From Schizochytrium sp. TIO01 (taxonomy: Eukaryota > Protista > Bigyra: Labyrinthulomycetes), in contig SMSO01000037.1 of NCBI GenBank assembly GCA_004764695.1, forward strand, positions 4,316,747 through 4,380,746: 64,000 bases of DNA, written 5' to 3'. Below the pieces are notes generated by a model that was not told the origin of the DNA, did not search any database, and saw only the letters and a list, made by a program, of their open reading frames with translations. The number at the start of each line of letters is the position of its first letter. Within the stretch, counting starts at the first letter, position 1. The translations under genes and the position numbers were made by a program. Shown here piece after piece: positions 1 to 53,118 of this stretch.

Positions 1-1448
1 TTGCAAATCCTACGCATCAGCAGATATTTTAACAAGACGCCATAGTTTGTATTTTTTAAACAGATGCTAGATTGTTATTCCAAAGGAAATCCCCGTTCTC
101 CGTTCTCCAGATAAAAAGAAGATGGCCTACAAAAGAAGTAGATTCTTCAAATACGAGTTATTGACATGAATTATGAATCATACTGTGGTCCTGTTAAACT
201 GGGCTCACCTATTAGCTGCACGTTCAGTGTAATATGCTATTACGGGGTTTTGCAACATTACAAAGGAATTTCCAATTATCAATTCTATCAAAGAAGAGAA
301 ATCTTTAGATTATGAAATAAAGCTGGAAAGCCTCCGCATGGTTTATGCAATCCTATCAACCTGTCCGACAAACTTCTTAGAGTGCAGTGAGCTAGACAGT
401 TCTAGAATATTCACAGACAGTCCTCATACGATTTTTTACTCACATCCAGAAGTGTTAATGGTGAACTCTTTACCTCTTTTGTAGATTAGGCATCAGAGAA
501 TTTAGCGTTAGGCAAAGTATGCGAAGCAATAAAATCTATTTTGCTATCATCATCTAAAGATATTGTGCTCAGAAGTAATAGGAGCATTGTATCGTAGCCA
601 CCAAAATGAAAACTTCGAAAATATGATAATATAATTTGGCAAGTGGAGTGGTTATATTTCTATCAATCAGGTGAGCTTTCAAGTAATCGACGATGCCAAA
701 AAACGAACAATCATAATGTACATGATGGTTAGAATGCATTTAATCACATATCGCTGCTGCATATCAAGTAGGAGATTGATCAACCATCTGGGGTCAGCCG
801 AGTGTGCTAAATTGCTCTAAGATTACCTACCCTGAAGTCTGACTGCAAAGTTTTGTGTCAGGTCTCTCTCTTGTATTAAACAATGTATATAGGTATCACT
901 ATTTAAAACTTCATTCTGGTAAAGTGATAGGATAAAACTTAAAATAGTATATATAACACCACACAATGATCTTTGTTTGATTAAAAGATAAATAACGTGT
1001 ACTAGTTACTCAATATCCCAGATACTAGTAGTACTTGTTTTCTAAAAGTATTACAGGTTGCTCAGTTTACTCATTAGCTTCTTAGGCTTTTTGAAGGAAC
1101 TTAATGTATGTATTCGAGTAAGGCGTAATAGGTACATAACTAATTCCTAATAAAGGAACTTTTAGTTAAAAGAAAGAGAAAAAGAAAAAAGATTTTATCC
1201 TGGTACGAATCTGCTCAGAAGGCAACCTAGTCGCAAATCATCAGCCAGCAATCAGGCACTCTATCCACCACAATTGCATGAGGTGTACTGGCCAGACAGA
1301 CTTTACATCCAGCGGCGAATCGTGTACGCATTTTTACTTGCTTTCCCCTGCCTCCGGCAAAATCCAGAAAACCACACACCGAAGCTAATCTTTAGTTAGA
1401 GCCTCTTGCTGGCAAACTCTCAAATCTTTCACGAGCGCTCGTATCACT

Positions 1449-44293: not shown

Positions 44294-45807
44294 ACCTTCT
44301 ACAATTGATGGAGTGGGCGCGTTAAATGTGACATTCAACCGAATATCTAACACTAAGGCCTAGAGAATTTCTGATACATCTTTGTATATTTCGTCTAAAA
44401 AGTGAAGAAGACCAAGAAGAAATAAAGCCTGAGGTACCAAGGTAGTGAGCAGTGAGTGAGTGAGTGAGTGAGAGCGTGAGTGCCCTCTATTCTGACGAGG
44501 TGGTGCCAATAAGAATGATCTGATGAAGTTATCAATGGCGGGATAGATGCACAAAATTCCCGGCGCCGACCTGGTCGATGACGCTTCTCGCGCTTTCGGA
44601 TGCCCAAGATCTGAGCTGCGAACCCTTTCATCTGTGAGAAGATTGAGTTGTCAGGCAAAGAAGAAACCGGGAATACTCCAGAGATTGATAGAAATTTAGT
44701 TAGGCAGGTAGGCTAGAATCACTACTATAGCAGTGGTACCTACTAATAATAAGTAGAGAGAGAGGCTAGTAATTGACTTGTTTGTTTGCTACCCACGGGA
44801 TTACAAGATAAAAGTCGCGATACTTTGAGGTGCTTCCATCGGCACCGAGCGCTACTTGGCCCAATTTATAAGTCAGCTTAAACCGCAGGGTGATGATTTG
44901 TGACTTGAAGATCACAGAAGTTGAAAGGAGGGCTTCAATGCCTCCCAATCTTCAACTTCTGAACCCATTCACTGTTTCTTTCTCAAGAGCTCGAAGCTGG
45001 ACTAAGCTGGATAGTTCAATATTAGCTACACTAATCTCATATCACTTGCATTTACCTCTGTCTATGAGCAACCCAACATCCCAGAAGGACCAAAACGCGC
45101 AGAACGCAGTGAAGTCCTACCAGCACCTTATGCCCTGCAACTTGTTTGAGCTACGACGATTATGGGCTTTTAAAAGTTGTTCTTCAGAAAAGGATCAGGT
45201 AGCAGCTCTTGCTTAAACTTAGGCAAGGATTCACAATTTGACTTAGCGCTTGAAAGTATGTCAAGGTAAACGAAGCAAACCACGCCCATAGCTTACCCTT
45301 ACAGTAATCACGAGTCCCCCTTAATGCGTTTAGATGCGAAGTGGTAACTAAATAAAAAATTAAATAAAAGAAACCAGACCCGAAGGGGAGTGCTACTGAT
45401 TTGTGAGATTAGTTAGGTTGAAAGCAATCCTGCGCTCATGATGGTTTTGAGAAATAGCTGTGATGTTGCTTCTGCTGGTACTATTCTGAATATTCAACTA
45501 TTAGTAACTAGGCCTATTCTTTGAACTTTATGTTTTTTAATTTTAATTATACTTTTTTAAAAACATAAATAAATGTCATACTTCTCTTAGAAAATGGCTC
45601 TAAAATCTTTCAGTTATTCTCGAGATGAAAGCAATGTCCCCTGAGAAAAAATTCGAGACTTTTTGTATTACCATGACCCTTGCCCTAGTTGAGATGGGTC
45701 GTGTTTTACAGCGAATGAGCAAAACAGAAGACGAGTTTAAAACTAGAAATTATTGTTGATATTTGAAGCTAAGAGTTTTGACAACGATACCCACCATTAC
45801 TGATTGA

Positions 45808-48720
45808 TTAAAAAACTTCTTGATTCAAAGTATATTTACACTCTGGGCCGGAGAAGCGGTTGCAATTGTCACGTACTGCACGGGCTACAGCAGGGGCGCC
45901 ACAATATGTAACACCAATCTCACTAACATTATGAAGCCGCGTGTCACGATTAATTTGAAATATCTGTTCCCAAACTGGCCGACCATTCCAAATCCAGATG
46001 TCGCCAAGTCGATTTGGTTCATCAAATTCATTAAATTTTTCAAATTGAAGCTTTCTTTGCTCTTGGGAAGATACAGTGGGGTTCTTCAAAAGTGTCTTCA
46101 GTGTATCCATGTTGAAACCAAGATCATCTGTATCCATAGTGCCAGCTTCTCTGGTGCCAGTGGCATTTCGCTGTCGCTCGCGTAGTAAATTGCGTTGCGA
46201 GCGTTGCACAGAAGGCTTTTCTACTTGCGTAGTTGACGGTACACTAGTTACATAGACATTGATAGATAGTCTATTATGCCCAGTAATGGCGCCTGCATTG
46301 CGATCAGACATTACACGCTTGCTGATATCTACGAGAGTTTCAACAAACCAATCAAAACTTTCCAGCTCGCTGTGACGCACAATCCAATAAAGACGAAGTG
46401 TTTCGGGAGAGAAACCTTTCCTCCACTTGTGCCTTGTTACATCTGATAAAATGGCAGCTGCTGGAGTTAGACCAATGCCCAATCCAATCACCATAACATC
46501 CTGGTATGAAGAATAGAGCTGCGCAGGCGCAGAATGGGGTCCATCAATCCGTAAAAGAGGCTTACCATCAGGGCCCATGTATTTACCGCGCTGTACAACT
46601 CCTGAATTGTCGAAGTGTGCGAAGTACTTCTCAAATGGAGCTGGCTTACCGTTTATTTCATCTGTGGAGGCCCCGGCAAGCAACCGAAAGTACTCCATTA
46701 CATTATAGGTCCACGAACCTTTGCTCTGAATCCGAATGTGCACACTAACGTATCCATCTCGCTCCAGGTCTCCCCAAGATGAAGATATCGTAAAAGGGTG
46801 ACTTTCATTCTCACTAATATGTGGCACTATCAGACGGAGATACTGACCTGCTTGGAACTGGAATTGATCTAGACGCTCAGGGAAGAAGTTTAGACGCAAT
46901 ACTGGGTGCGAGAATCGTACATAGTCAACATAAAATCGATGTGTTCCGCGTTTTGTACGAATGATTCGGTCGATAGCATACGCAGGAAATGTAACTATCG
47001 CAAAATACCATACTTTTGGACCATGGGCGAGGAGAAGAGGAAATGCAATCAAAAAAACATGGTGACTCCACCAAAATGCTTCGTAGTTTGATCTACGTAC
47101 CGAACTGTGTGCCGCGCAGAATAAAATTACAAAGGCTAGTGTGATACCGCCACCTGTCCAAAGGGCAGTGGCACCAAATTTGTTGATAGATGCTTGAGGC
47201 GCAAGAGCAAAGTTAGCATAATGGAACGCAATGTGCCCTACACTACCGATAAATATGGCATACGCAACAACTTTGTGAAAGGCAATGCTCTTCTTAAGAG
47301 GAACAACAGATGCGAGAGTCTTGTTTGGGCTAACTTCAATTTTGGAGATGCGGTTTAACGCCGCTCGAAGAACTGGGATAAGAACTAAAGCACACGTGAA
47401 ATCTAAGGAAGTTCCAAAGCCTTTAGCGACTGGTGCAAGAGCACTAAGACAATCCTCGGTCAAAGATGACCTAAGACAGGCTTGACGATCGCTTTCTACG
47501 ATGTAGTATCGAAGTCCGAAAAGAAACAAATTTACGAACAAAAATCCTCCCATAATGACGATCTCTGTCCATGTCCAGGTGGACATCTTTGTAAGAGATA
47601 CCTGAGGAATAAAGCCTTGGGGCTGACCTACCCCTTCTTCGTTATTCATGAACATGACAAAGTTTAGAATTGCTGTGAAACATCCAACAACACCGGTTAT
47701 GATCGTGGCATAGCTTGTAAAACAAGGTGCGCTAAGTCCAACATATAAAATACTACGTAAAGGAATAGAGGAGAGTCCGTCTCTGTTTCGCCTTTTTAGT
47801 CCCCAAAAATATTCAAAAACAAACGAGACAACACCCATGCATATTACAACTGGGGCTGTCCAGCTATGATAGGTTCCAAGCATCTGCTTCTTTGTAGAGT
47901 TACCAAGCTCTTGGGAAGATTCTGAATACCAAAGAATCGTGAACGCACCGGTGATTAATGCAAATAAAGCGAATGCATAACCCCATGTATGACAAAGGTA
48001 AAGCCATTTAAGGGGCTTACCTGTGGAGGTTCTTTTTTCATCTCGAATTTGTGCACGCAGATCACGAGGAACTTGCTTCCCTGCAAGGTACGCAGGTTTT
48101 GGTGGCCTTTTGGGCGCTTCTTCAGCCTGAGCCTGATACCATCCACTGGGGGAAGCTCCATAGTTTGCATCCTTTTTGGGGCGGCCCTCTTCATCCCTTT
48201 CAACCACTTCAACATAATTTGCAGGAATATGTCCACGCTTTCCATTGAGCTCTGCAATCCACCACGCGCCACCTTCTACTTGTTCAATGCCGATTAGAGT
48301 CTGACCAGGTCGAACTGTTAATTCATCCTCATATCGCGCGACGTGTCCATAGAGGGCACGTAATACAGTCCCGCGTTTTTCACCAATACCAAGTTCAGGA
48401 GCAAATGGATTTAGCCAATTCACAACGCTCATGCCACGCCTCTGGATAGTGCCTGACACACCTGGGCGAGGGTTATTGCTTTGCGGTTCGAGACGAATAT
48501 TTGGCTGATTACCAAAGAAGCTTGTTTTGCGAGTAGCCAAACGACGCTGCTGTTCTGGCGAAGGACCTTTGAACCCAGGAGGCGGGGTTGTACTTGTATC
48601 ACCTTTCTGATTATAATAGTATGGTTCATTCGTTTTTTTATCAATTGCCATGAACCATTGTTCAACAAGAGCTTCTTCGCCCTCGTCTTGATCTGACTTG
48701 TTGCCTTTTTCCTGGCTCAT
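45808..48720 (-). CDS. NADPH oxidase (NOX) fusion: WW - SH3 - Pro-rich motif - p22phox-like 4-TM domain - NOX catalytic core
   Basis: Heme His pairs H482/H496 (FHKVVAY...GHIAFH) and H553/H566 (WSHH...AHG) with NOX2 spacing; FAD site GQY...HPFT; IDGP; GLGIGLTP; LYWIVR; GRPVW; CGA; terminal EVF. SH3 ALY...DELT...WW...GHIPANYV; WW W...YYYN. Confidence 0.95.
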   Translation of the reverse strand: MSQEKGNKSDQDEGEEALVEQWFMAIDKKTNEPYYYNQKGDTSTTPPPGFKGPSPEQQRRLATRKTSFFGNQPNIRLEPQSNNPRPGVSGTIQRRGMSVVNWLNPFAPELGIGEKRGTVLRALYGHVARYEDELTVRPGQTLIGIEQVEGGAWWIAELNGKRGHIPANYVEVVERDEEGRPKKDANYGASPSGWYQAQAEEAPKRPPKPAYLAGKQVPRDLRAQIRDEKRTSTGKPLKWLYLCHTWGYAFALFALITGAFTILWYSESSQELGNSTKKQMLGTYHSWTAPVVICMGVVSFVFEYFWGLKRRNRDGLSSIPLRSILYVGLSAPCFTSYATIITGVVGCFTAILNFVMFMNNEEGVGQPQGFIPQVSLTKMSTWTWTEIVIMGGFLFVNLFLFGLRYYIVESDRQACLRSSLTEDCLSALAPVAKGFGTSLDFTCALVLIPVLRAALNRISKIEVSPNKTLASVVPLKKSIAFHKVVAYAIFIGSVGHIAFHYANFALAPQASINKFGATALWTGGGITLAFVILFCAAHSSVRRSNYEAFWWSHHVFLIAFPLLLAHGPKVWYFAIVTFPAYAIDRIIRTKRGTHRFYVDYVRFSHPVLRLNFFPERLDQFQFQAGQYLRLIVPHISENESHPFTISSSWGDLERDGYVSVHIRIQSKGSWTYNVMEYFRLLAGASTDEINGKPAPFEKYFAHFDNSGVVQRGKYMGPDGKPLLRIDGPHSAPAQLYSSYQDVMVIGLGIGLTPAAAILSDVTRHKWRKGFSPETLRLYWIVRHSELESFDWFVETLVDISKRVMSDRNAGAITGHNRLSINVYVTSVPSTTQVEKPSVQRSQRNLLRERQRNATGTREAGTMDTDDLGFNMDTLKTLLKNPTVSSQEQRKLQFEKFNEFDEPNRLGDIWIWNGRPVWEQIFQINRDTRLHNVSEIGVTYCGAPAVARAVRDNCNRFSGPECKYTLNQEVF

Positions 48721-50325
48721 TTTGAGTCTTGAGGTTTTCTTTATTCGAGGAATCTACTTTTTACAATAAATGAAGATGTACCTCATACGTGCTGGTAAAT
48801 AGTCTGGCAGCTCTCACTGCACCAATATATTTAACGAAGTATAAAGTGACTTCGAATACAATAGTCTACTGCCAACGTATAGCTATCACTTCAGCGAAGA
48901 GGCTTCAAACCAATGTGTACAATGGTGAGCTACAATCCAGCTCAACGTACTCTGATGGGAGAATAAACTCTCAACAGTACAATGATTAAACTATGATAAG
49001 CTTCCGTAGAGAATTACTTTGCTGGAGCTATAGAGCGAGTCAACCTGCAGAGGCCAATGCTATTCGTCTCACGAAGAGACATACACAGGAGAAGTCAAAC
49101 GACGAATGAGGAATGGACTAAAAGACTCAGAAGCGAGTTCGCACGAGAAAAAGAATAACCTTTGCCCTCGCCAGTGTCTCCACACAGTTTGAAGGCAAAT
49201 TAGTTGCAGTGACGCGCGTTCCTAAAACACGTTCGTTTCAATTGATGGCAATCGAAGCGCCAACAAGGTATGTCTTGTCGCGCGTGCACAGTTTCGGAAA
49301 TGCCTGTACTTATAATTTTTTCTATAATGTGGAGATAAAGGTAAAAGTTCTATTCTTCTAGGTAACAAGTCCTATGCTCATCATCTCTCTTTATATATTA
49401 GAACAAAGGGAAGGAGAACTAGGCCTTTCAGTAGAAAAAATCATAAAATTCAGATTGATCTGGAGTCCAAAACGCAGAGTTCGGACGCACGCTATGCACA
49501 AAGAAATGTGGGGGAGAATGAAACTTGAGCCGACTGAGTCTAATGCTACTACTCTAACAAAACTCGTGAAATTCTTGTACAGCAATCAATTTATCTCTCT
49601 TTCTGATAAGGGTCATTGGTCAGGGACAAAGTCAGTGCCTCCGAACGAGTGAATTATTGATTGATTGACAGGAAGGTTGTGTTCAATGAATAATTTATCT
49701 ATTGATAACTACTAGTAGCTATTAGGTATATCTTTTAGCTCGAGGTTGAAAGCGAGCGTCTTGGAGTGTGCACGTGCACAGAGTGTGCACTAACCCTTGC
49801 CTAATATTAACTATCCATATGCAGTTTCGAAAGATTTGATGAGTTGAAACGGAGCTTTCATATGAGCGTGCTAATTGACTCGAAACCACCTATTCCAGAA
49901 AGAGATAGTTTGAATGAACTAAACAGTACTTATTGAGGCAGTTTGCCAGATTAAAAAAGAGGGTTATGGCATCGCAATAAGTGTTCACCTTAGATAGTAC
50001 ATCCTATCAGGTAAGGCTTAAATAGACGTGCTAAATTGCTTCCGCAGACGAAATATATCATGGCACAGTCGCAGAATTGCAGGAACAGGAAATTAAAAAG
50101 AAGTAAATTGTGATACCCGGAGAAAACAGAAGCGAAAGGGACCTTTCAAAGACTCGATTTAAGGAGTTTACCTTCTTCTACTTAATTCCATTCAAGTCAT
50201 GAAAAGTACCTCAAGCTTGACTTTCTACTTAAATCAAAGGTTTGATAGGAGACGCCTCTAATGGTGAGAGTGCCGTTCTTGAAAAGTTGCGTTCTGTACG
50301 CTATGATTGCTCGAAGTCGAGAATA

Positions 50326-53118
50326 TTACATTTCATGTTTGACTAGGGTAGTATTAAGCACATGGGCTATGCCAAGTCGAGCAGCTCTATTCGCAGACCG
50401 GATGGAGACATTTGCAGATCCTTGTACTAGAGCAATTTGAACCAGGCAACCAACAATTGTTGGCTTTTGTGTTCTGGCGTTGACAGTTGCCGTTTCTAAA
50501 GTACCTGCTGCGAAAACTGAAATCGCATCAGCTCCTTTCCATGCGCCAAAGTGTAGAGCCTCGAGAATATTTAAAACTTCATCAATTTGCTCTATTCCAA
50601 TCGTTGAGATAGCAAATGTATGTTGAGACCCTTCGCCCATTGAATCCCACCTGGAGGTAAAATCGGCATTGGTGAATTTAACAGGTTTCAAAAAAGAAGT
50701 TACAGCTGTAGGTAGTCGCAGGTCTACGAAGTACAGCAACCCATTGCAGGAATACGAAAGCTTGATGTCGTGCGGCTTCTCAAATGGTACCATGCATGTT
50801 AAAAGGAGCTGCTGCCGGACCTGCGATCGAGGTCCAATGAAAGGCTCAATGAAAGAAGCTTGAACAGAGAGATTTTGATCGCCCGGCACAGTGCAGATAA
50901 CTTCTTGGCAAGGCAAATTTGTCTTGTTACCAATGAAAAGTACTACCTTTCCTGAAGCATGCTGATACTGATGCTGGATGCCCACTTGAATGATTGTATC
51001 TTCATGAAGCAACCCTTTTGTATTCATAAGGGATTTTCGGTAAAGGTCAAGGCTAATGTCTTTGGCGAGGCGAATCGTGGGGGCTGAAACAGAGTAATCC
51101 CCAGTCCCAAGATCTAAGAGATCTCCAGTACTGGAGTCGCAGGTTTCATTTTCTTCTTCTTCTACTTCAGTTTGATTTTGGTGCTGTAATTCTTTTTTTT
51201 CAGAGTGAACTGTATGATGATTCGAGCCCGTATCTGTTATTTTAGAAGTATCGGATTTGTTTTCATGGCCCTGAAAGATGTCTCGTTCACCTGCTGCTAT
51301 ATGCTTAGTAGAAAACTCTGGCATTGGCTCTAGCACTTTGCTTCGGCTTGTTGAATCTAGGCTCGCGAGCATAAAGTATTCACATGCACGCTGTTGAAGT
51401 TCGAGGTCACTTGAATCGCGGTAGGCATCAAAAAGCAAGCTGATTTCCTCATTGAGATCTTGAGTGTATAGTACGGATAGTTTTGCATAGGCGTGGAAAA
51501 ACATGCGACGTGACTGGCTAGACGCAGTACTAAAATGTTGATTGATCGTCTCAAAGAGACCCACCGGATCTGCATAGCCTTGCTCAACAAGAATATTGCC
51601 AAATTCCCCCAGGAGATATGCAGATAGCACAAGGCCAATCTCATGAACATGAGGGGATTGAAGCATCCCTAGAGCAGCCTTGGCTGCGTATTCTTGAACT
51701 TCTGGAGTGTTTATTACAATTTTCACAGTGCGATACCAGATATCCTCTGAAACAAATTCTCCAGCGCTTTCAACTAAGTGGAATATTGTATCCAAATACC
51801 ATTGACGGTCCACGGCAAAACGTTCGGTGAGAATAGCGATTTTTAGAACGACCTCTGGCTTCATTGCATAGTTAGCTGTCGCGAGATATTTAAGAAGACG
51901 CTGCACTACCTCACGAGCATTTGCGACATTGCACATAGCGAAGACTAAATCGAGCGATCGTTTGCGAATCGAGTCGTCCTTTTCATCAAGGGAAGCAAGG
52001 ATCACTTCTTCATGCTCACGAAGCTGCAAGAGAACACGTGCCATACCCTCACGATTGGCTAGTTGTGCAAGACGTGTCATTCCTGAGAGTCCCAGATATC
52101 TAACATTGGCCTCGTTGAGGACAATAAGGTGCGCGAGTAAGCGAACAGTAGAGTGCAAAAGCTCAGGTGGAGCACGGGCACCATAGTGCAGAACCAGGTT
52201 TACAGTCTCCATGCGCACTGCATGCATGACAGTAGCCTTGGTGATTGTGGTAGCCTCAGTGCCAAATGCGAGGAGCTTTTGCATAATTTCAATTAAATTT
52301 GCGCCAGACGCTGGATCAGAAGGGGGCGGGAACCGTTGCAAATACTGAAGAGTTCGAATCTGCAAGATTGGACAGGGGATATCATGGTACATGTAGTCTT
52401 CGGGTACGGATTTCGACAAAACAATGGTTTCTAGTAGTTGAATGGCCAAAGGAACAGATGCGAGGAGTAAATTTTCTTGATCAGGAGTTGCGGATAGCAG
52501 CTCGATCATTGCTAGAGTAAGTTCATGGGTGTGGCTAAGCCCCGGTTTAGCAAGTTTAACCACCATCTCTGCATCTAGTAGGCTCTCATTAAATTCAGCC
52601 AGGCATGCTGCACATATTGCTGCCTTCTTTCGTATGGCTAAAGGAGTTTCATCAGATACAAGAAAGCGCATTATGTCAGGTCCCAAAACACTGGCAATCT
52701 CACGCCCGCCAATATTTCCGCAAAAGTTCAAAGCCAAAGCTTGTGCAAAAGGTTTATCACTCTGCAAATCATTTCGTAACGAGTTGATTGCAAGTCGTAC
52801 GAGATCTTTATCGTTGCCAATAAGTACTCCAAGTGCGAGGTAACCAACTTGTTTTTCAGCCGGAACGGGCGAACTGGCAAGGTTAACGGCTTCAATATGA
52901 CCGAACTCAACCTCGTATCCTAGCATGCGAATATATACAAGCTTCCATATGTATTTCTTACGGTCATAGCTCTTGAGCTGCTTGCTACTCGCAAACTTGG
53001 CGCGAATCTTCGCCAGTTCCTTCCTTACTCGCGAAATCTCGGCTTCGTGACTTGTGCACATGCGAATGTCACTTATAAACTTGCGCAGTCCTCGCTTACT
53101 TGTGGGAAGGAGGTCCAT
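50326..53118 (-). CDS. AP2A: AP-2 adaptor complex subunit alpha
   Basis: RGLRKFISDIR, ELAKIRAKF, YDRKKYIWKLVYIRMLGY, EKQVGYL, NVRYLGL, LKIAILTERFA, ELQQRACEY, and appendage domain GLLHEDTIIQVG. Confidence 0.96.
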   Translation of the reverse strand: MDLLPTSKRGLRKFISDIRMCTSHEAEISRVRKELAKIRAKFASSKQLKSYDRKKYIWKLVYIRMLGYEVEFGHIEAVNLASSPVPAEKQVGYLALGVLIGNDKDLVRLAINSLRNDLQSDKPFAQALALNFCGNIGGREIASVLGPDIMRFLVSDETPLAIRKKAAICAACLAEFNESLLDAEMVVKLAKPGLSHTHELTLAMIELLSATPDQENLLLASVPLAIQLLETIVLSKSVPEDYMYHDIPCPILQIRTLQYLQRFPPPSDPASGANLIEIMQKLLAFGTEATTITKATVMHAVRMETVNLVLHYGARAPPELLHSTVRLLAHLIVLNEANVRYLGLSGMTRLAQLANREGMARVLLQLREHEEVILASLDEKDDSIRKRSLDLVFAMCNVANAREVVQRLLKYLATANYAMKPEVVLKIAILTERFAVDRQWYLDTIFHLVESAGEFVSEDIWYRTVKIVINTPEVQEYAAKAALGMLQSPHVHEIGLVLSAYLLGEFGNILVEQGYADPVGLFETINQHFSTASSQSRRMFFHAYAKLSVLYTQDLNEEISLLFDAYRDSSDLELQQRACEYFMLASLDSTSRSKVLEPMPEFSTKHIAAGERDIFQGHENKSDTSKITDTGSNHHTVHSEKKELQHQNQTEVEEEENETCDSSTGDLLDLGTGDYSVSAPTIRLAKDISLDLYRKSLMNTKGLLHEDTIIQVGIQHQYQHASGKVVLFIGNKTNLPCQEVICTVPGDQNLSVQASFIEPFIGPRSQVRQQLLLTCMVPFEKPHDIKLSYSCNGLLYFVDLRLPTAVTSFLKPVKFTNADFTSRWDSMGEGSQHTFAISTIGIEQIDEVLNILEALHFGAWKGADAISVFAAGTLETATVNARTQKPTIVGCLVQIALVQGSANVSIRSANRAARLGIAHVLNTTLVKHEM

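Follow-up and report, generated by a model that had tools for sequence, protein, structure and literature searches.

Does a reading frame on the reverse strand of this labyrinthulomycete DNA encode an NADPH oxidase that carries its own p22phox subunit? In humans, p22phox is the obligatory partner of NOX1-4 and its loss leads to chronic granulomatous disease. The frame lies in a 64,000-nucleotide (nt) stretch of contig SMSO01000037.1 of Schizochytrium sp. TIO01 (hereafter the window), for which the original prediction, made from the letters alone, proposed a single-chain enzyme with p22phox fused to the NOX core and with WW and SH3 modules in front, to be examined by profile and structure comparisons with p22phox and by a search for split transcripts. 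Our answer, to which we assign a probability of about 75%, is that the locus is a genuine gene, intronless and expressed, whose product is a single-chain flavocytochrome b558 with ten helices, made of a p22phox homologue (amino acids, aa, 235-362), a linker of ~22 residues and a complete NOX core (aa 385-970). The remaining uncertainty concerns function, not sequence identity. What is new here is a NOX with the p22phox subunit and an SH3 module built in, both building blocks being already known.

All coordinates are positions in the window and all residue numbers refer to the 970-aa window protein. In the list of open reading frames (ORFs), 45808-48720 of the reverse strand is one unbroken frame of 970 codons that starts with ATG and has its stop codon at 45808-45810, just as proposed, and no competing ORF of similar size overlaps it within the window. 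The DNA around the gene has ~43% G+C and contains long intronless eukaryotic ORFs. Two public runs from two different studies (X5 and X7, whose "RNA" type is a guess) contain contigs that lie whole on this region with zero joints, one of 3565 nt on 45725-49281 (X5) and one of 3555 nt on 45732-49284 (X7), so that the search for split transcripts returned transcript-like contigs of 3.56 kb spanning the ORF unjointed. They extend ~560 nt upstream of the ATG and ~83 nt past the stop; the flanking intergenic DNA is at zero depth in both runs, and the neighbouring adaptin gene is found on a separate contig with a different depth. By contrast, run X1 shows a single 16.5-kb genomic contig over the region. 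The X5 and X7 contigs show the pattern of assembled transcripts, which is good evidence, short of proof. A merged gene model was rejected because the frame is continuous, the order of the parts is conserved among homologues and the contigs span the whole ORF.

Relationship of the four-helix block to p22phox

Hydropathy peaks appear at aa 245-267, 284-309, and 327-359, the last one corresponding to two helices, and they agree with the helices that AlphaFold places in the block (aa 238-269, 288-306, 321-335, and 337-358), and with the four-helix membrane block (aa ~236-363) first seen by eye. Taken alone (aa 225-375), this block has no match in Pfam (PF05038 included) or among PDB sequences. A six-frame scan of the genome with PF05038 gave only a chance-level match (E 0.13) of the proline-rich tail of the model on another contig, while a homologue search restricted to the block found the window protein only and, when the block alignment A3 was used, P0025 only (relatives are given here by P numbers). 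When the block was searched exhaustively with phmmer against 1.84 billion representative proteins, 13 relatives emerged, and nearly all of them have a NOX core downstream. Three relatives (P0018, P0019, and P0044) pass the PF05038 cut-off on their own, with 27-28 bits versus 25, and in alignment A5 (22 members) six sequences match PF05038 individually. The full-length P0044 (EukProt, 907 aa) displays the series SH3, Cytochrom_B558a, Ferric_reduct, FAD_binding_8, and NAD_binding_6. Since the window block alone scores nothing, its membership of PF05038 is established by the family profile and not by the single sequence.

The family profiles give a much clearer picture. Profile A2, composed of eight block sequences and searched against 177,635 distinct PDB sequences, had exactly three matches at E <= 10, all of them human cytochrome b-245 light chain (p22phox), with E 5e-9 to 1e-8 and spanning p22phox residues 2-131, that is, all four helices. 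To exclude that the Pfam-positive clade drives this match, we built profile A4 from the blocks of the window protein, of a second fusion encoded in the same genome (see below), and of P0020, P0022, and P0025, none of which matches Pfam alone; its match to p22phox reached E 1e-7, and the next one was a G-protein-coupled receptor at E 0.1. The by-eye alignment with human p22phox is borne out by these searches, in both of which p22phox was the sole significant PDB match, and the resemblance is for this reason far beyond chance. The proposed profile comparison has thus come out in favor of p22phox, through the family profiles and through the three relatives above the Pfam cut-off.

As for the fold, AlphaFold2 with a 22-sequence alignment on aa 225-600 gave a model with pLDDT 77 and pTM 0.75, in which the block has pLDDT 81-95 (the whole protein modeled as a single sequence reached pLDDT 37 and was unusable). 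Foldseek lists p22phox chain 8gz3_A with probability 0.97, and VIA-align superposes model residues 11-143 on p22phox 8kei_A with Z 12.0 and a root-mean-square deviation of 3.3 Å over 113/133 residues at 17% identity. Of 48,161 representative chains, p22phox matches the modeled block best, followed by generic soluble four-helix bundles with Z <= 9.0 and 6-7% identity, and so the structural comparison, made with a predicted structure, also points to p22phox. The linker that follows (pLDDT ~64-76) contains a short helix in the model and sits between hydrophobic segments.

Conservation over 32 non-identical family blocks is concentrated in a few residues: G258 (32/32), E303 (32/32), W264 (31/32), R322 (30/32), and E361 (30/32). 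A hidden Markov model alignment pairs G258, E303, R322, and E361 with p22phox G25, E53, R90, and E129, respectively, and W264 with p22phox G31, this last residue being not common to both. The p22phox substitutions E53V and R90Q abolish Nox2 binding and superoxide production (Miyano et al., 2022; PMC9486109); as E303 and R322 align with E53 and R90, the residues kept are those known to matter for the contact with NOX. By sequence profiles and modeled fold taken together, the block is homologous to p22phox.

A different origin of the likeness has to be weighed at this point, namely that the four helices are an unrelated membrane anchor, similar to the TM extensions at the N-terminus of fungal and plant ferric reductases, and that their resemblance to p22phox is a compositional chance. 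The lack of any Pfam or PDB match of the window block alone would fit such an anchor, middling Z scores come easily to helical bundles, and some of the FRD proteins in Zhang et al. (2013; PMC3591440) carry two or six additional helices at the N-terminus, of no known function. However, the profile matches are specific (p22phox only, E 1e-7 to 5e-9, six orders below the next, over all four helices), three relatives pass Pfam's curated cut-off, and the invariant residues coincide with those that p22phox requires for Nox2 binding. An unrelated anchor is already largely refuted, and we consider it extremely improbable.

The NOX core and the N-terminal modules

Behind the linker, Pfam identifies Ferric_reduct (PF01794, aa 471-563), FAD_binding_8 (PF08022, aa 618-680), and NAD_binding_6 (PF08030, aa 739-954, 60.7 bits), all above their cut-offs. 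Among PDB sequences the window protein matches NOX5 (3e-36) and NOX2 (1e-29) best, and VIA-align of the haem domain gives Z 19.0 to the transmembrane (TM) domain of csNOX5 and 15.9 to NOX2. In NOX2 the haem pairs are H101/H115 in TM3 and H209/H222 in TM5; the corresponding pairs of the window protein, H482/H496 (14 apart) and H553/H566 (13 apart), are invariant in alignment A1. The C-terminal residue is F970, and NOX2 likewise ends in Phe. With the Pfam domains and all the key residues present (Table 1), the description of a full six-TM NOX plus dehydrogenase holds. An insert of ~80 aa is found in the NADPH lobe (aa 826-905; 46006-46245), much longer than the NOX2 segment, family-specific, conserved in A1 and holding family-conserved motifs (GF...L...L.NP...Q), which could be a regulatory surface.

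The core domains are named "ferric reductase" in Pfam, and the oxidase function of the family is a prediction from sequence signatures only; one could thus think of a ferric or cupric metalloreductase instead of an oxidase producing reactive oxygen species (ROS), with the p22-like and SH3 domains serving localization. The signature positions argue otherwise. According to Zhang et al. (2013; PMC3591440), His101, His119, Thr178, and Gly179 separate ROS-producing NOX from presumptive metalloreductases, and all four are NOX-type in the window protein (H482, H500, and T522-G523), which sides with the NOX, and not the ferric reductase, reading of the original prediction. The Arg54 equivalent is present too, and in both structure and sequence the protein matches NOX5 and NOX2 best, rather than STEAP or FRE. 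To our knowledge p22phox partners exist for NOX enzymes only, which also counts against a metalloreductase, and we regard this possibility as very unlikely.

The N-terminal modules are of unequal quality. The SH3 domain proposed at aa ~117-174 is secure, with three Pfam models matching aa 121-173 above their cut-offs (SH3_9 38.9, SH3_1 31.5, and SH3_2 27.0 bits) and with matches to many SH3 structures in PDB (E 1e-10 to 1e-5), the p47phox SH3 among them. The WW domain, placed at aa ~16-48, stood only in part. A scan of the isolated N-terminus with PF00397 gives 21.4 bits (E 2.6e-4), under the cut-off of 26.9 bits; the first Trp and a YYYN motif are conserved in P0002, P0003, and P0008 in alignment A1, and the second signature Trp is missing, being replaced by Thr in the window protein and by Glu or Thr in the closest relatives. 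A single-sequence model has short strands in this region, but with pLDDT ~50. Because of the score under the Pfam cut-off and the missing second Trp we label it "WW-like". The motif PKRPPK follows the SH3 domain and precedes the membrane block, and a regular-expression scan showed that 10 of the 18 full-length members of the family, the SH3-less paralogue of the same genome included, have PxxPx[KR] ahead of the block.

Two known designs were discarded on the basis of this domain order. Pfam returned no EF-hand family at E <= 1 in the window protein, so that EF-hands are absent, as had been stated, and an EF-hand NOX (NOX5/RBOH/DUOX type) is ruled out. The extra helices precede the NOX core, again as stated, which rules out helices inside the dehydrogenase of the red-algal type.

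Family, paralogue and surroundings of the gene

According to the block profile, the block directly precedes the NOX core in 17 of the 18 retrieved homologues that are full-length, among them SH3-less forms and a protein of the labyrinthulomycete Mucochytrium quahogii. The genome searched (64.07 Mb, 37 contigs) contains a second p22phox-NOX fusion of 871 aa on another contig (G000:C34:3031390-3034005, equivalent to L003:1318-3933, forward strand), with a proline-rich N-terminus bearing several PxxPxK motifs, the block and the NOX core, and with neither SH3 nor WW. Neither PF05038 nor profile A2 revealed a p22-like gene standing alone in the genome, and ~5 further NAD_binding_6 loci have no block.

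In a quick maximum-likelihood tree with SH-aLRT support, for which the EF-hand NOX P0014 served as a distant outgroup, the window protein groups with P0002, P0003, and P0004 (support 100) and then with P0015 and P0008 (support 99), a group that carries SH3 except for P0008, which has no Pfam SH3 match. The own-genome paralogue is sister (support 100) to P0023, annotated as a protein of Mucochytrium quahogii, a labyrinthulomycete. This last annotation means that the family occurs in stramenopiles, and since the paralogue groups with P0023 and the window protein elsewhere, the two paralogue lines predate the split of these organisms. The public model of P0003 (NCBI CAK9104160.1, 1452 aa; 50% identity) adds a PhyH domain in front and Roblox/LC7 behind, and it is probably the product of three neighboring genes merged by annotation.

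Table 1. Parts of the predicted single-chain oxidase and their positions in the window, with key residues and their NOX2 equivalents.
Feature	Residues (aa)	Position	Strand	Basis
Single ORF (WW-like, SH3, PxxPxK, p22phox-like 4-TM block, NOX core)	1-970	45808..48720	-	ORF list, Pfam, same part order in homologues
Extent of transcript-like public contigs, unspliced		45725..49284	-	whole contigs X5, X7
WW-like motif (degenerate)	20-50	48571..48663	-	PF00397 below cut-off
SH3 domain	117-174	48199..48372	-	Pfam, PDB matches
Class II SH3-ligand-like motif PKRPPK, between SH3 and membrane block	203-208	48097..48114	-	regular-expression scan
p22phox-like four-helix membrane domain	235-362	47635..48018	-	profile versus PDB, VIA-align, conservation over 32 sequences
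Cytosolic linker (~22 residues), p22-like TM4 to NOX TM1	363-384	47569..47634	-	model, hydropathy
NOX six-helix haem domain	385-591	46948..47568	-	PF01794, NOX2 alignment, VIA-align
FAD-binding lobe, HPFT at 641-644	604-720	46561..46911	-	PF08022, alignment to NOX2 HPFTLTS
NADPH-binding lobe	721-970	45811..46560	-	PF08030, alignments to NOX5 and NOX2
NOX2 R54 (O2-site Arg)	R452			alignment to NOX2
NOX2 H101	H482			alignment to NOX2
NOX2 H115	H496			alignment to NOX2
NOX2 H119	H500			alignment to NOX2
NOX2 T178-G179	T522-G523			alignment to NOX2
NOX2 H209/H210	H553/H554			alignment to NOX2
NOX2 H222	H566			alignment to NOX2
NOX2 HPFT	HPFT 641-644			alignment to NOX2
NOX2 GAGIGVTP (GxGxxP)	GLGIGLTP 746-753			alignment to NOX2
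NOX2 C537	C940 (CGAP 940-943)			alignment to NOX2

Some details of the locus deserve mention. At the start codon (48718-48720) all four public runs (4/4) carry two extra bases (AT) that are missing from the window assembly and leave the ATG and the frame intact; the region is rich in A/T, and the difference reflects either a minor error of the assembly or variation between strains. The 5' leader implied by the contigs (48721-49284, reverse strand) has ~560 nt and several upstream ATGs, which could serve translational control or mark an alternative start site. The next gene upstream, a 930-aa ORF at 50326-53118 on the same strand, is an adaptin large subunit (Adaptin_N 301 bits, Alpha_adaptinC2 30 bits) covered by its own transcript-like contigs at higher depth, and the strains of X5 and X7 have a 27-base deletion and a 5-base insertion at ~50054-50083, just downstream of it.

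Working model, origin and comparison with known systems

How such a protein would work can be outlined from its human counterparts. The topology is consistent, with the N-terminus and its SH3, the basic TM2-TM3 loop (KRRNR), the linker, and the NOX N-terminus and dehydrogenase all predicted to be cytosolic; both ends of the block lie on that side, as the fusion of p22phox to the NOX N-terminus in a 10-TM protein had presupposed. The p22-like bundle would pack in cis on the NOX haem domain through its conserved Glu and Arg, and would stabilize and mature this domain as p22phox does for NOX1-4, and electrons would flow from NADPH through FAD and two haems to O2, producing superoxide on the non-cytosolic side. 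Both the cis packing with its stabilizing role and the electron transfer from NADPH to O2 are, in our opinion, probable.

Several observations weigh against the single-chain cytochrome b558 as we describe it. The block as a single sequence matches neither PF05038 nor p22phox in PDB, and its homology rests on profiles and predicted structure. The Z of 12 is not decisive alone, because values below ~13 are common for helical bundles, and for this reason we treat the fold match as supporting only and base the argument on the sequence profiles. The window protein lacks the C-terminal proline-rich tail typical of p22phox (around Pro156), with the linker to NOX in its place. The cis packing on the p22phox face of NOX is a prediction, and an ESMFold2 two-chain run of the block versus the haem domain, made without alignment, scored 0.00 and speaks neither for nor against it. 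The production of ROS by any family member is a prediction from sequence signatures, and the X5 and X7 contigs are taken as RNA on a guess about the type of run.

A homologous block might also not serve its own chain at all, but pair in trans (in a domain-swapped dimer or with another FRD protein) or persist as a vestigial anchor with no role in haem maturation. The missing verdict from the complex prediction leaves room for this, as do the blockless NAD_binding_6 loci of the genome, which would offer other partners. On the other hand, the block is always directly upstream of the NOX core across a deep divergence and joined to it by a short linker, the pTM of 0.75 of the two-domain model suggests a defined mutual arrangement, and the conserved Glu and Arg speak against a vestige. 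We therefore see pairing in trans or a vestigial block as unlikely, and packing of the bundle on its own NOX remains our preference. More tentative is the role of the N-terminal modules. The SH3 and the adjoining PxxPxK could replace the contact between the p47phox SH3 and the proline-rich region of p22phox, either by latching the chain onto itself or by docking partner proteins; the pair echoes that contact, but the proline motif lies on the other side of the membrane block. That the SH3 and PKRPPK form such a latch or docking site is a possibility that we would put below even odds by a good margin.

The origin of p22phox is obscure. A speculative scenario, in our view rather doubtful, is that p22phox originated as the first four helices of a NOX with ten helices that predated the stramenopile/Amorphea split, and was later split off towards amoebozoans, fungi, and animals, and that the fused form is a cytochrome b558 switched independently of partners by its own SH3 and proline motif. 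The reverse course, in which p22phox was anciently a separate protein and became fused on a single occasion, is possible too. Under both scenarios, subunit-regulated NOX would not be an opisthokont invention. A homologous domain fused to NOX in a family with a labyrinthulomycete stramenopile shows that the NOX-p22phox partnership is older or more widespread than Massari et al. (2022) state (PMC9421330). The fusion is also a natural "Rosetta stone," with proteins that are separate in animals present on one chain and their functional link backed purely by evolutionary evidence. It also shows which residues of p22phox have been kept over such a distance, namely the counterparts of G25, E53, and R90. 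In practical terms, a single-chain cytochrome b558 with a fixed 1:1 stoichiometry could ease expression, purification, and structure solving in comparison with the human heterodimer, and the built-in SH3 and proline motif offer a testable minimal model for how contacts between SH3 domains and proline-rich regions came to control NOX.

In the literature, Kawahara et al. (2007) reported p22phox from metazoans and from one choanoflagellate, plus a doubtful homologue in Dictyostelium (PMC2121648), and Massari et al. (2022) restrict p22phox, p47phox, and p67phox to opisthokonts (PMC9421330), in keeping with the remark that p22phox is not expected in this lineage. Among the architectures catalogued by Zhang et al. 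(2013; PMC3591440), the Naegleria NOX alone has an SH3, and this one lies within the dehydrogenase. The original prediction treated the architecture as undescribed, and we found no description of a natural p22phox-NOX fusion in the full-text literature searched, with most subscription journals outside that search; since members such as P0044 are Pfam-positive, the pair of domains may already be on view in databases without any remark on it.

Extra TM helices beyond the six of the FRD are a property shared with the red-algal, diatom, and plant "preNOX"/FRO proteins (Zhang et al., 2013; PMC3591440). In those, however, the four additional helices separate the FAD domain from the NADPH domain, or the helices are N-terminal with a kinship that is not known, and His119, present here, is absent. 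The Naegleria gruberi NOX (architecture M17; Zhang et al., 2013; PMC3591440) is, like the window protein, a protist NOX with its own SH3. The Naegleria SH3 is embedded in the C-terminal domain that binds NADPH, with no p22phox-like block reported, while in the window protein an N-terminal SH3 is followed by the p22-like domain.

The window protein resembles NOX5, RBOH, and DUOX in being a single chain with N-terminally fused regulatory modules, and NOX5 is the best match of its core in both sequence and structure. These enzymes are regulated by EF-hands, which the window protein does not have, and contain no p22phox-like domain. DUOX has an extra helix before the six-helix domain and needs DUOXA. 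Closer in the composition of the system are the fungal NoxA with NoxD/Pro41 and the Dictyostelium NoxA-C with the p22phox-like CybA, non-animal NOX without EF-hands that depend on a small p22phox-related partner (PMC9421330, PMC2121648). The partner is there a separate gene and the lineages are Opisthokonta and Amoebozoa, versus a stramenopile here, NoxD and CybA being compared by description only.

The closest counterpart is the human cytochrome b558. NOX1, NOX3, and NOX4 pair with p22phox as NOX2 does. The complex of NOX2 and p22phox (PDB 8gz3, 7u8g, 8kei) combines, like the predicted protein, the four-helix p22phox fold with a six-helix, two-haem NOX and its FAD/NADPH dehydrogenase, and both have in common the p22phox residues G25/E53/R90 and the key residues of NOX2 or their equivalents, the absence of EF-hands, and a pair of SH3 and proline motif within the system. 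The human enzyme consists of two polypeptides, whereas the window protein is one; with respect to human p22phox, to which its identity is only ~17%, the C-terminal proline-rich tail has been swapped for the linker and the PxxPxK is N-terminal of the block; with respect to NOX2, the dehydrogenase has the ~80-residue insert. Finally, the SH3 that in the human system belongs to p47phox or NOXO1 is here within the enzyme itself.

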